Assembly: GCA_002269645.1 (NCBI GenBank)
Contig: NIVC01002094.1
Span: 124,001 to 188,000, forward strand
Direction of reading: 5' to 3'
Source: Macrostomum lignano
Lineage: Eukaryota
Length of the DNA: 64,000 bases
This document shows, one piece after another, positions 49,650 to 56,500 of this stretch (its first letter is position 1; each line of letters starts with the position of its first letter). The notes under the pieces are model-generated. The model was not told where the DNA came from. It was given only the letters and a program-made list of their open reading frames with translations, and did no database searches. Made by a program: the position numbers and the translations under genes.

Positions 49650-52600
49650 CTAGCGTGGAAATTCAGTTGAGCAGCCAATTAAAAGCAAGCAGGCAGCCAA
49701 ACCAATGGCAGCTACAGCCGAGACGCTGCCTTCTCTATTGGCCGAGTTGCACTTGTCAGAATTGCATGAGCTGCAGGTGTACATAGTGATGAACTTCTTA
49801 ACTTCAGATAATCCATCCAGCTCACAATTTCCACTACCTCCTTTAACCTGAAAAAATGAGGTAAATGACTGTCCCTAGATGAAGTTCTGTTTACTCATTC
49901 TTGGCAGATCTGTTCTTACTTAAATTTCTTAACAGATCTGTTAATTTTTGTTAACACATTCTTAACAGATCTGTTCTTACTTAAATCTCTTAGCAGATCT
50001 GTATCTGCTTTTGTCTTACAAGATCTTACAAATCTTTGCAAGCCATTTTTTATTGTTTGGTACGTAAAAAACATTCGTGATTTTTTAGAAAATACTTATG
50101 AGGTAAAGAGAAAACAAAATTTCTAACTGTATATCAGAAAAAAGACTTTCGTATATTTTCACATTTCTCTGCTGGATCTTGTCAGATCAGTTCTTGCAGA
50201 TCTGTACAGACCAGTTTTGAAAGGTGTCTAAATTGTTTTTTTCCACAAAATATTTAACATAATAGTAATTACGTTTTTTTAATGATTTGTATTTATTTTA
50301 CTTGTTCTTCTGGCAGCCAACAGTAAATGAATTTGTTTAAATATTCTTTCCGCAGTTCTGAACATAGTGGACCCTTATTGTTTGAATTCTCGCTCTTGCA
50401 ATATCCATCATCTCAGTTCTTTCTTTTGACTTAGCCGAATACGTAATTTTTAATTCCTTAAATTGTTTCATAGTGTAGTATCACTATTTTTTACTTTTTT
50501 AGCCATAATAACTTTTTTGATTAAGTATAGCTATGGCTTTAAATGAAGAGCAGATCGCGTCATCAATTAAAAAAATTTGACATAATTGACAGACTGACTA
50601 TAAAATGTATGATATGCTATATATATATATCTATATCATATATATATCTAGGCTTGTTTCCTACTCCCAGGCCTATAAGTATGAGTAGGCCTAGGCCTAT
50701 GACTTTGTTCTATGCTTTAATAGAAACAGAATGCATGTCTAGACCTAGTGATGTTGTCCATTAATAATTCATTAATCCATTAATAATTCAGAAATTCAGT
50801 TACATACATAGATCAGTATTTTTGTAGGGCCTAGTCTTTTGCATTTCATTATATTATATTTATATATACATACCTAGTTCTAGCCCCTAGGCTAGGGCTA
50901 GGCTAGTTCTAGTGACCTAGCTAGTAAGTAAATCTTAATTAAATAGGTCTATTCTGTTTTTGTTTGTTTTATATATGCTTATCTAGATTTATAAATAGGT
51001 AGACTGACATATCTGTAAAACTTGGTTTTAATCCCTCCTTGATTTTAAACACTTAGGTTAAGAATGTAATGTCTATTTTTAGTAAATAGTGTTATAACTA
51101 GGCTTATCATTTTAATTTTAAAATAAAATAGGCCCTACTCTACTAAAAATTGTAATTGCTATATAGGGTATAGTTTTTCTGAATTAGAATTAAACCTGGA
51201 TGCTTAAATATAGGCTTGTGGTTGTTAGAAAGTTATCTTAAGCCTTGACCTACTATTTGAAGAATATAGATAGGCATAGCAAAATCTAAAATTATTTATA
51301 CTAGATAAGCCTAGATAAATAATATGAAAAATATAGAATAGAAGAAAAACAGGTCTAAATTTAATTAGACCAAAGAACTTTTACAAAAGTTATTACTCTG
51401 ACTATTTAAAAACATAACAATGATATTTGTTTTATGTTTTAGTTATTTTGAATTGAATATTAATGTTTAAAATCCCAGAACTTTACTACAATTTTCCCTT
51501 TCATTGCAGCTACTTTACATGGTCAATATGGCATCGCTACTTATGGGTTCCAAGCTTGTCTTTATACAAATGATTGCTAAAAGTGGCAAGCATCCTATGA
51601 TTGCTAAAAGAAAAAATGAAGCCAGCCTAAAGTAAAAATGCAACATGATAAAGAGCCCTAAAGTATTACTAAGAGCTCTTATAGACCTACTTTTATTGAT
51701 AACAAAGTAAGCTTTCTAGCAATATTGACTTTAAAATCTTTCAGTACTGGACTCTTTCAGTTTCAATTATTTGCAAACCAATTTAATTGTACATTGTAGT
51801 AAAAGATGCACCTGGTTTTTTTCAAATGTTTCTGCTTCTATTTTTTAGTTTCTAAAAGTATTGCTCACCCTAATTTTATTAGTCCATTGTACCATTAGTA
51901 TTTTTTTCTATTGAATGTGTGCTTAACTTTTGTTTTGAAGTTGACTTATTTTTTGCTTGTGCTATTTCCCTTGTGCATACAAGTTTTATTTCATGAGCAT
52001 ATATGTGTATTTGTTTACATTTTCACAAATAAATATGTCTACTTTATTTTAATTGTTCAATGGCATTTGCTTTTGTTCTGGCAGCTTACTAGCACAATAC
52101 TAAAAGTGCAGAATCAAATAAGAAAGTCCTGTCATAACTCGTGTTCTTTATTGGAATTAAATTAGTGCATTAGGGTTTTATAAATGGATTACTAAACAGA
52201 TCTTGGAAGATTTGATAAGACGGACAATGCATTCAATTGGTAAAGCTTAATACATCTTACAAGATCTGCCCAGATCTCCTAAGATCTGCTCGTGCAGACA
52301 GTGCAAGATCTTCCTGCAGATCTTGTAAGTTCTGCCTATACATTTTAATAGTGCAGATCTGTTACGTTCTTGCAAGAACGTAGCGAGAAGCTCCAGACAG
52401 ATCTGCTAAGAAATGGCATGACGATTTCATCTAGGGTGTTAACTGGAGTCCTACCAAATGCTCAGGAAATCCGCCAGACTCAGTGGTGCGCATCTGACTC
52501 ACGATATATTTGCCATCCGCATAGCCGTGAAGTCGAAAACATTCTTATAAATTTTGTTTTCGTAATCTTTATGTTAATGCTTAACAATGGATTATTAATA

Positions 52601-53515: not shown

Positions 53516-56500
53516 ATGAGTCAAACTTGCTGCTGCTTGGGGCTGACGAAAAGAAGCGGCAGCATCGGCAGAGGCCGGCTGCTGCTGCTGCTGCTGAGAT
53601 ACTGCGGTCAGTGGGACGCCAATAGGACCAGCTTCAACCGTCACCCCATCAACTCCGCGCTGCGGTACCTGTGCCCGGGCGCGTATTCAGCAAAGAGTTT
53701 TTAGCAGGGCTCGTGCATGCTTGCTCGTCTCACTCACTCACTCACTCACTCACTCACTCACTCACTCACTCATTCACTCATTCACTCACTCACTCACTCA
53801 CTCACTCACTCACTCACTCACTCACTCACTCACTCACTCCCTCATTCACTCAATCAATCACTCACTCACTCACTCACTCACTCACTCACTCACTCACTCA
53901 CTCACTCACTCAATCACTCACTCACTCACTCACTCACTCACTCACTCACTCACTCACTCACTCACTCACTCACTCACTCACTCACTCTCATTATACACAT
54001 TTGGCCCCTTGGACAGTTCAAAAGACTTCCAAAGGAGCGAGCGGCGAGCCTCTGTGTTGGCAGCGACCGAGTTGGCATTTAATTGACACATATGCGTGAC
54101 ACATATGCGTGATAAAATGGCGCGTGATAAAATGGTTGGTAGTAGTGCTCAACTGCAACTGGCTAGCACACAGGCCTCTGCATTCATCCCTCTCCTTCCC
54201 ACCTCTCTCCTTCCCATCTCTCTCCTTCTCACCTCTCTCCTTCCCACCTATCTCCTTCTCAAAGAGTTTCTCCTTCTCAGAGAGTTCAGAGAGTCTGTAA
54301 TTAAAGCTTCATCGGTAGATAATAAAATCGATAAGAATAAATGCAGTTTACACTTACCCCAAGGAGGCCAGTGGAGTTTCGCAACTGCATGCAAAAATTA
54401 CGTCACTAGATAAATTGGAGTTTACAACAGTAAATGACGGACAGGGTGCGCCTTGTAAGTAAGCATGTAAGTCACGCCACTACTGCAGAGGTCCTTGCCA
54501 TCGCCATTGTCAAAACTCGGATCAACCAGTGGGTGACTTCAAAGCACAGGGATCGAGGCGGGCTGACGCCCCCGACTGCTGGGAATCCCGCGCTGCTGTC
54601 CCCTGGATTCAACCGCAAGGACATCAGGCATCGCCACCTCCAGGGAAAATCCGCAGTGAGGAATACCCATTCTGCCTCTCCAGTGTTGAGAATGCGGAGC
54701 ACTTTATCTGTGACTGCCCACGTACCTCGGGCCAAACCGGAAGACTTTCCGACGTTTTCAGGCCTGGGAATCTCTGCCAGCTTGTCCGCTACCCGAGGGC
54801 TACCGGGCGAGCGACCATGCACCTCCTGGGCTCTCCGAAGGGGGACCGCGCTGCGGACCCAGCACCACCGGATCTCTTTGCGCGATGAGTCTCTAGATGA
54901 GAATCAAATGGAATAACGCGCAAATTTCCCGCATTCTCTGGAATGCAAATCCATTTACGAGTCGGAATGCCAAGCCTATGCTCTAACTACCTCTAACATG
55001 TCCGTTAAAATATGGATTTAATAGTTTGTGATCAATTTGTAAGAAATTAAAAATGCACAAGAAGAAACAGAGGTACACACACTTCTGGTACTTGTTTGAC
55101 ATGTACGGTAGAGCTCTCTCCAGATGCCATAAGTCCAATTCATTTAAAGTTTTGCAGCAATGGTTGTAAGCTTTAGTGACTCAAGCCAGCCCTCTTCATC
55201 GTATCCTCTCTCTCTCTCACTCCTTCTCTTGCACTTTGAGGCCACTACCGCGGCTCAGATGCTTCTCCTAAGTCTCCCTCTCTCTCCCCTCACAGCCTCC
55301 CCATTCCACATCCAAAGTCTCTCTTAAGATTTCAGCAATTGGTTCTGGCGCTTAACTGTAGGGACTAAACGCTCAGACCTTCTCTCTCTCTCTCTCTCTC
55401 TCTCTCTCTCTCTCTCTCTCTCTCTCTCTCTCTCTCTCTCTCTCTCTCTCTCTCTCTCTCTCTCTCTCTCTCTCTCTACCTTCCTTCCCTCCTATAGCTT
55501 GAGCCTCTGCTCAGGCTATAAACCTTGTATAACTCTGTCCCAGTTTTACTCCCAGGGCAAATTCTGGGGATTGCAGAGCATTGCGGTAGGTAGTGAAGAA
55601 TTCCGACAAGTCTGTGCTAGTCTTTTCTATTCTCCATGTCAGGCGATTGATTTTGAATTCTACAGTTTGGAAATGGAGCTGCAAGGCCAAATCAGATTGA
55701 TTTGGTTCCCCATGTGGATTTTGATGGACATTTTGGCTGCTCATTTGAGCACTGTTCGTAAGTAATTATTTTATTCAATGTCACATAGTTTTTGTTGTTA
55801 AATGGAAGTCAAAATCATTTGGCAGATCGATTTAAACATCACTCCAGATTAGATGAAATGTCAAATGTGTCACTCCAGATTAGATGAAATGTCAAATGTG
55901 TCACTCTAGATTAGATGAAATGCGTCACTCCAGATTAGATGAAATGCGTCACTCCAGATTAGATGAAATGCGTCACTCCAGATTAGATGAAATGCGTCAC
56001 TCCAGATTAGATGAAATGCGTCACTCCAGATTAGATGAAATGCGTCACTCCAGATTAGATGAAATGCGTCACTCCAGATTAGATGAAATGCGTCACTCCA
56101 GATTAGATGAAATGCGTCACTCTAGATTAGATGAAATGCGTCACTCTAGATTAGATGAAATGCGTCACTATAGATTAGACACAATGCGTTACTCCACATT
56201 TGACACAATGCGTCACTCCGGTTTAGACAAAAGGCGTCACTCTAGATTAGACACAATGCGTCACTCTAGATTAGACACAATGCGTCACTCTAGATTAGAC
56301 ACAATGCGTCACTCTAGATTAGACACAATGCGTCACTCTAGATTAGAAAAATTATGCGTCACTCGCCCCCGGAACCTTCAGCCGCTGTTGCCGCAGTCCA
56401 CCAGCAACACCCAGCGGTGGCACCGAGCACCGATCGACCCCGAATTCTGGGCTCAGCGGAGAAGCGGCTGGCCCAGCGCCTGCTGCAGCGCTACGCCGAG

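Follow-up and report, generated by a model that had tools for sequence, protein, structure and literature searches.

A probable unprocessed pseudogene of a Macrostomum Ly6-like family, head-to-head with a nicotinic-type receptor gene

The genes of Ly6 proteins and of three-finger toxins share a layout in which a signal-peptide exon, closed by a phase-1 intron, is followed by two exons for the domain, and some Ly6 proteins are modulators of nicotinic acetylcholine receptors (nAChRs). Among the receptors themselves, a Pro-Ala replacing the glutamate between transmembrane segments M1 and M2 is the criterion for the acetylcholine-gated chloride channels of Schistosoma and Lymnaea (PMC4055736). Here we analyse a locus at which relatives of both groups seem to stand side by side, in a 64,000-nucleotide stretch of the Macrostomum lignano genome (assembly GCA_002269645.1, contig NIVC01002094.1, positions 124,001 to 188,000 of the forward strand), hereafter the window, to whose first nucleotide all positions refer. 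An original prediction had read short minus-strand exons as a Ly6-type gene sharing a promoter with a divergent nAChR-like gene, the two forming a co-regulated module of receptor and modulator. We find instead that the minus-strand element at 49650-52875 is, in all likelihood, an unprocessed pseudogene of a Macrostomum Ly6-like family and that its position beside the receptor gene is probably accidental.

The identity of the element follows from its homologues. An exhaustive HMMER search with the concatenated exons against 1.84 billion representative proteins returned exactly two matches, P0001 (E 1.1e-24, 48% identity, query residues 6-129 of 134) and P0002 (E 2.2e-12), both of which are hypothetical proteins of the M. 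lignano assembly; the exons are therefore real and belong together. Matches found by tblastn cover all three exons, and at the DNA level the relic and its paralogues are homologous over both introns as well, from a point some 70 nt before the ATG to within the 3' untranslated region. The relic product had no match in Pfam at E <= 10, and none in a word-indexed homologue search or a PDB sequence search. The word-indexed search also missed P0004 and P0001 themselves despite shared five-residue words (within HGYADGKY and TSTTVDC), and for short proteins a negative from a search of this kind is not to be relied upon.

When 5.8 billion proteins were searched with a profile, only M. lignano members were retrieved, so that in the databases searched the family is found only in this free-living flatworm. 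The members are P0001 and P0003 (PAA88446.1 and PAA61502.1; Mlig034191), P0004 (PAA70848.1/PAA88445.1; Mlig012521) and P0005 (Mlig008332g1), all hypothetical proteins, together with P0002 (PAA66977.1; Mlig024640g1), which carries the UniRef name "UPAR/Ly6 domain-containing protein." Literature searches on the M. lignano gene identifiers, and on Macrostomum together with Ly6, returned nothing relevant. The intact genes are arranged as tandem pairs, with a WD40 gene downstream, and share a three-exon structure. Exon 1 (58 nt) encodes MPLNVF...ACI and ends in phase 1 at a G|GTAAGC donor; exon 2, a single exon of 173 or 200 nt ending in phase 0, encodes VTNSIKCY, the second and third cysteines, HGY.DGKYF and GTGAGTCA; and exon 3 (183 or 186 nt) encodes G.CG.C ... 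TCS.C.S.KCNSASRKGS, a hydrophobic tail and the stop. The resulting proteins of about 140 amino acids open, by inspection, with an n/h/c-type leader (MPLNVF...ACIAVTNS|IKCY), carry eight cysteines spaced C-x16-C-x6..29-C-x16-C-x2-C-x~15..27-C-x2-C-x4-CN, and close with what looks, again by inspection, like a C-terminal glycosylphosphatidylinositol (GPI)-type signal, composed of NSAS, a polar spacer of 7-8 residues and a hydrophobic end of 15-16 residues.

The window copy retains this structure, with splice sites at the homologous positions and exon lengths that break the frame. On the minus strand, exon 1 (52813..52875, 63 nt) begins with the ATG at 52875-52873 (MPLN...) and ends at the donor G|GTAAGC; intron 1 (52704..52812, 109 nt) runs from GTAAGC to TTACAG; exon 2 (52503..52703, 201 nt) ends at a GTGAGT donor; intron 2 (49848..52502, 2,655 nt) runs from GTGAGT to TTTTTTCAG and holds a transposon; and exon 3 (49650..49847, 198 nt) follows the acceptor TTTTTTCAG and ends with the stop TAG at 49652-49650. 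Both introns thus keep intact splice signals. The relic and the M. lignano genes agree exactly in MPLN and in the first 12 nt, and since ATGCCACTTAAC is the same in every copy, 52875 can be taken as the true start. Exon 2 reads (A)MTNSIECYDYTGDKTNTSTTVDC, then an asparagine-rich stretch and, in another frame, ECFRLHGYADGKYI; exon 3 translates as VKGGSGNCELDGLSEVKKFITMYTCSSCNSDKCNSANREGSVSAVAAIGLAACLLLIGCSTEFPR, followed by the stop, with its hydrophobic C-terminal tail, and its G+C content (45-46%) stands above that of the flanks (27-31%). All of the hidden exons of the original prediction (52875-52813, 52703-52503 and 49847-49650) are accordingly present, as are its motifs IECY, VDC, ECF, GNC and TCSSC.SDKCN and the hydrophobic tail.

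Intron 1 shows a feature of its own, in that its 3' half (52704-52760: TTTATACACTCA..TGTAATTT..TATTAATTTGTCTGTTACAG) is conserved with two M. lignano paralogues, at 5700-5745 and 10135-10182 of L001, one of the paralogue stretches described below. This conservation exceeds that of much of the coding sequence, the paralogues sharing only about 45-58% protein identity, and it may mark a splicing or regulatory element or be the product of gene conversion.

Where the original prediction failed was in the assembly of these parts into a signal peptide, a cysteine-rich domain and a GPI-type tail: the parts exist, but the exons are out of phase and no open reading frame (ORF) joins them. Exon 1 measures 63 nt (0 mod 3) where the frame requires 1 mod 3 (64 nt), a 5-nt insertion by comparison with the 58-nt exon of the intact homologues having left it a single base short. 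The hydrophobic leader core TAIVLFACFA (NNSSTAIVLFACF) lies in a frame other than that of the ATG, one in which no ATG is present. The ATG frame instead yields MPLNALKRTIPLLPSYCLRAL, which lacks the core and is not a signal peptide, and past the exon 1 donor it enters CCA TGA; the predicted signal peptide is split over two frames, and the tail is present. Exon 2 measures 201 nt, although its length should be 2 mod 3 (200 nt, the paralogues having 200 and 173 nt), a +1 frameshift. Its halves lie in different frames, as seen in the two tblastn segments (52722-52549 and 52541-52500), and a TAA at 52547-52545 falls in the frame of the downstream half. The donor that the original prediction had called unclear at this point does not exist: no canonical donor of the right phase was found between VDC and ECF, and because VDC and the next cysteine share one exon in the intact homologues, the break in the window copy is a frameshift rather than a splice junction. 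As sequenced, translation gives MPLNALKRTIPLLPSYCLRALP and stops after 22 codons, with five further stops to follow, so that the out-of-frame stretch between the two frameshifts holds six.

Several alternative gene models were tried and rejected. A trans-spliced leader that would supply an AUG to the TAIVLFACF frame was dropped, the ATG at 52875 (MPLN) being the family start in the homologues. A donor at ACT G|GTGACA, after IECYDYT, can be joined in phase to the acceptor ATAAG|AATG, which skips VDC and gives a six-cysteine product, but no homologue has an intron at this point, and the frame of exon 1 is not restored. A mini-intron of 37-41 nt after NNPLL (with a GC or GTTAAG donor) is of the wrong phase or non-canonical and is absent from the homologues. 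Using other donors for exon 1 in the ATG frame produces leaders that lack a hydrophobic core, and no convincing upstream ATG exon was found in 52876-53516, where none is needed.

Further lesions affect exon 3. The fourth cysteine of the family (G.CG.C) has become serine, with AGT at 49835-49833 in place of the TGT of the paralogues. The original prediction had placed a lost cysteine at a KGC-to-KGG change; the residue in question is the serine of GG-S-GNC, not that glycine. Moreover, an 11-nt deletion has taken the ancestral stop, so that the exon 3 frame extends four codons into the former 3' untranslated region and the tail ends CSTEFPR where the paralogues end CSAF. The window copy therefore has neither an intact reading frame nor the full set of eight cysteines, of which it keeps seven, and has presumably lost its function. 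Of the 39 residues on which all five M. lignano proteins agree, its frame-corrected product retains 34, and it is 41-49% identical to these proteins; the two figures together point to a separate paralogue lineage whose decay is fairly recent. An assembly artefact is an unlikely cause, since two indels within 420 nt, a cysteine substitution and an 11-nt deletion stand amid genes that are clean, namely five full-length single-exon sulfotransferase ORFs, TAF11 and six in-frame receptor exons. That this copy may be decaying had been entered in the original prediction as a caveat; with two frameshifts, six stops and a lost cysteine, the caveat has become the main result.

The 2.5-kb element with terminal inverted repeats (TIRs) that had been noticed in the last intron is likewise real. 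It occupies 49873..52436 (2,564 bp), has perfect 11-bp TIRs (CCCTAGATGAA) and a 3-bp target duplication (ACA), and carries subterminal CAGATCTG repeats. Its longest ORF measures 88 amino acids, and it has no transposase ORF. Without it, intron 2 would measure 88-91 nt, comparable to the 87-101 nt of the paralogue introns, which represent the empty site; the insertion has thus enlarged the intron about thirty-fold. TIRs, target duplication, the lack of a transposase ORF and the empty site in the homologues identify it as a non-autonomous TIR DNA transposon.

Taken together, these features suggest a simple history. A small three-exon gene would have been duplicated with its introns kept, and the copy would have landed near the receptor gene. 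The copy would have decayed through two frameshifts, the change of the fourth cysteine to serine, the 11-nt deletion that removed the stop and the arrival of a transposon in intron 2. On the simplest view, the 640-bp head-to-head position would be an accident of the landing site of the duplicate.

Whether the family to which the relic belongs is truly a three-finger family was approached by several routes. Against the Pfam families UPAR_LY6, UPAR_LY6_2, QVR, Toxin_TOLIP and others, the window product had no match at E <= 10, and the best Pfam match of P0002 was Toxin_cobra-type (E 0.49), on the C-terminal motif. Searches of the PDB with phmmer and with the family profile gave no match, and an hhalign comparison of the family with an alignment of nine known three-finger proteins, which on checking does retrieve Lynx1, PSCA, SLURP-1, bungarotoxin, erabutoxin and CD59, reached a probability of 4%. 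An AlphaFold2 model of P0002, built from a five-sequence alignment and of low confidence (predicted local distance difference test score, pLDDT, of 50), shows an all-beta domain flanked by a helix at either end, and when it was compared by Foldseek with 350,542 PDB chains, all of the best 50 matches were three-finger proteins, among them Lynx2, muscarinic toxins, alpha-bungarotoxin, Lynx1, erabutoxin, PSCA, CD59, Lypd6b, uPAR, BMPR-IA and Prod1. For this pLDDT 50 model, the best E-value was 0.038 and the target-normalised TM-scores lay between 0.5 and 0.65. A single-sequence model of the window product (pLDDT 42), which serves as a rough control, had no three-finger matches in Foldseek. The eight cysteines of the paralogues stand in three-finger order, with a terminal motif C-x2-C-x4-CN rather than CC-x4-CN. 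Given this framework, the leader, the tail, the exon structure and the matches of the P0002 model, a three-finger fold is likely for the family, though not proven, and its members are most likely Ly6/uPAR-like cell-surface proteins with a predicted GPI anchor. The identity originally proposed for the element is thus supported as regards descent from a gene for a small cysteine-rich product with leader, GPI-type tail and probable three-finger character, and is not supported as regards a specific link to Lynx, SLURP or quiver.

The neighbour on the plus strand is, from its sequence, a nicotinic-type Cys-loop receptor subunit gene, as had been proposed, and it looks intact. Its recognisable exons at 56457-56632, 57335-57453, 58871-59006, 60350-60773 and 61455-61541 encode the ligand-binding domain, the Cys-loop (C-x13-C), the M1-M2 linker and M2, and the gene continues beyond them. 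In Pfam these exons match Neur_chan_LBD (E 2.7e-40) and Neur_chan_memb (E 8.8e-12), and the best 60 PDB sequence matches are all nAChR subunits (best E 3e-41); a homologue search with the nAChR loop fragment gave no match. A putative first exon at 53516..53606 starts at the ATG of the original prediction, encodes a signal-peptide-like MSQ...RYC and ends in phase 1 at the donor G|GTCAGT, which fits the acceptor at 56456/56457 in phase with the first recognisable nAChR exon, so that a splice from 53516-53606 to the 56457 exon is plausible. The M1-M2 linker has Pro-Ala (SPAK) instead of the glutamate of cation channels, in keeping with the anion-type label given to this gene earlier, and the vicinal cysteine pair that defines alpha subunits is absent from the loop-C region (exon 60350-60773). 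To judge from the motif, then, the subunit is probably anion-selective and of the non-alpha class. The introns of this gene are packed with micro- and minisatellites, including (TGAG)n, (CT)n and units of 21-24 nt and of 6 nt, in tracts at 53700-54080, 55370-55500, 55884-56340, 56700-57290, 57440-58760, 59100-60300, 60780-61150 and 61550-62150. Such repeats give rise to long spurious ORFs ("LTLLT," "DLTSVRQ" and "GIFEDGIF" repeats), which makes ORF-based tracks misleading in this region.

The divergent spacing on which the module idea was built holds up, the two ATGs (52875 and 53516) being separated by a spacer of 640 bp (52876..53515). Within it, only the roughly 70 nt adjoining the relic align with the upstream regions of the paralogues, and the half on the receptor side is rich in G+C (50-62%). 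The intact paralogues were examined in five stretches (L001-L005) on four M. lignano contigs, together with as much as 10 kb of flanking sequence, in which neither tblastn (E <= 10) nor blastn detected any nAChR-like sequence; their loci thus lack the head-to-head partner. Neither Pfam, nor hhalign, nor profile comparison revealed specific similarity of the relic family to Lynx1, SLURP-1 or the Pfam family QVR. As the relic is non-coding as sequenced, its intact paralogues have no nAChR neighbour and nothing ties the family to Lynx, SLURP or quiver, we read the adjacency as probably incidental, and the co-regulated module of receptor and modulator is not borne out.

Some observations weigh against a dead gene placed by accident. 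The relic may represent a non-coding RNA, or there may be an intact allele. The lesion in exon 1 sits at a run of four A, where the addition of one A brings back a perfect signal peptide; the two frameshifts, -1 followed by +1, offset each other, as might be expected of a short mis-assembled stretch; and nearly all of the family-invariant residues are kept. As regards the family, the three-finger assignment draws on the cysteine pattern and on a low-confidence model for which Foldseek gives no match at E <= 0.001, and the Pfam, PDB-profile and hhalign searches give no Ly6 link. Finally, the survey of synteny around the paralogues covers about 10 kb per side.

One alternative holds that the relic is dead for coding and still transcribed as a non-coding RNA, divergent from the promoter region of the receptor gene and with or without a regulatory effect. 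It would account for the intact splice signals of both introns, for the retained homology immediately upstream and for the G+C-rich block between the genes, but that block adjoins the receptor gene rather than the relic, and nothing at the locus requires such a function; we regard this as unlikely. Alternatively, the gene might be functional in the animal, the frameshifts being assembly errors or confined to one haplotype, and its product a GPI-anchored three-finger modulator sharing the 640-bp promoter with a regulated anion-type nAChR subunit. The closeness of the divergent ATGs, the A run in exon 1 and the cancelling shifts, the 34 of 39 invariant residues and seven of eight cysteines, the conserved 70 nt upstream and the established action of some Ly6 proteins on nAChRs would all suit this proposal. 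It would, however, call for two independent errors in a span of only 420 nt, whereas the nAChR exons are clean, as are about 4.4 kb of single-exon coding sequence from other genes, and the error in exon 2 would have to sit in ATAAGAA, which is not a long homopolymer. Moreover, a structural cysteine has been lost by substitution and the stop with 11 nt, the intron carries a 2.56-kb insertion, and the intact paralogues lie away from nAChR genes in a family without specific similarity to Lynx, SLURP or QVR. A functional gene is therefore quite improbable. The fuller claim, in which the frameshifts are artefactual or restricted to one haplotype and a live GPI-anchored three-finger protein is both co-transcribed with a subunit of an acetylcholine-gated chloride channel and modulates it, faces the same evidence, and we hold it to be very improbable. 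As for chance open frames in A+T-rich DNA with an accidental cysteine pattern, the motif C-x0-3-C-x3-6-CN is by itself not significant (about two expected per window, one observed), and Pfam is silent. The terminal cysteine motif with hydrophobic tail and stop recurs, however, in only 3% of composition-matched shuffled windows, and a match at E 1.1e-24 to a real protein over its whole length, DNA homology that takes in introns and untranslated region, and an exon-intron structure common to relic and paralogues count as having already refuted this reading.

The remainder of the window holds genes and elements of other kinds. An intronless tandem array of Sulfotransfer_4 genes occupies 12803-27623 on the minus strand, with full-length ORFs at 12803-13585, 14887-15675, 21810-22688, 24910-25689 and 26829-27623 and a truncated gene at 17144-17707 (minus strand; profile positions 2-160 of 215 only). 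Also on the minus strand are a single-exon TAFII28/TAF11 histone-fold ORF at 8589-9122 (Pfam E 5e-33) and the exons of a lipoxygenase gene at about 36958-41014, comprising PLAT (39806-41014) and lipoxygenase pieces (38157-38993 and 36958-38034). On the plus strand, two adjoining ORFs at 43807-45084 carry P-element/THAP9-like transposase domains (Tnp_P_element HTH and TNP-like RNase H, N-terminal) and are probably a broken DNA transposon. At 1866-5341 (minus strand), two long ORFs of 511 and 589 amino acids lie in a block of about 55% G+C with many overlapping ORFs on both strands, and in Pfam they match only Ribosomal_L35p, weakly and below threshold. Scanned against Rfam, the window gave no match.

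A receptor and its modulator hard-wired into one module would, if true, bear on the co-evolution of Ly6 prototoxins and nicotinic receptors, and a live linked pair would amount to a physically coupled receptor and prototoxin in a flatworm; the evidence at this locus speaks against it. What is gained is the identification of an unannotated pseudogene, a definition of the exon structure and cysteine framework of an uncharacterised Macrostomum family with a split CC, and notice of a gene for a probable anion-type nicotinic subunit. The intact paralogues (e.g., P0004) are reasonable candidates for a Ly6-like action on acetylcholine-gated chloride channels in flatworms.

Set against known systems, the receptor gene of the window resembles SmACC-1/2 of Schistosoma mansoni and the anionic nAChR subunits of Lymnaea (PMC4055736) in being nicotinic-type with Pro-Ala for the M1-M2 glutamate, its ion selectivity and ligand being predicted from that motif, and it resembles the non-alpha SmACC-2 in lacking a vicinal cysteine pair in the exons recovered. 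The relic shares with its M. lignano family three exons with the same splice phases, the MPLN start, the cysteine framework, the HGYxDGKY core, the TCSxCxSxKCNSAxR motif and the hydrophobic tail. It differs from that family in its frameshifts, the change of the fourth cysteine to serine, the 11-nt deletion, an asparagine-rich low-complexity loop and the transposon in intron 2, and in being a single copy beside an nAChR-type gene, whereas the M. lignano genes stand in tandem pairs beside a WD40 gene. More distantly, the family departs from the Ly6/uPAR proteins and snake three-finger toxins (Lynx1/2, SLURP-1, CD59, PSCA, erabutoxin, alpha-bungarotoxin) in that their adjacent CC is split (C-x2-C) and a long segment, of as many as 29 residues, separates the second cysteine from the third, and from most Ly6 proteins in lacking the extra disulfide of loop I. 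It agrees with them in its small products, predicted to be secreted or GPI-anchored, with the first cysteine at mature position 3 (I-x-C-Y), in eight cysteines of short-chain toxin order and approximate spacing with a C-G-x-C pair and a terminal C-x4-CN, and in a signal-peptide exon with a phase-1 intron ahead of two domain exons.

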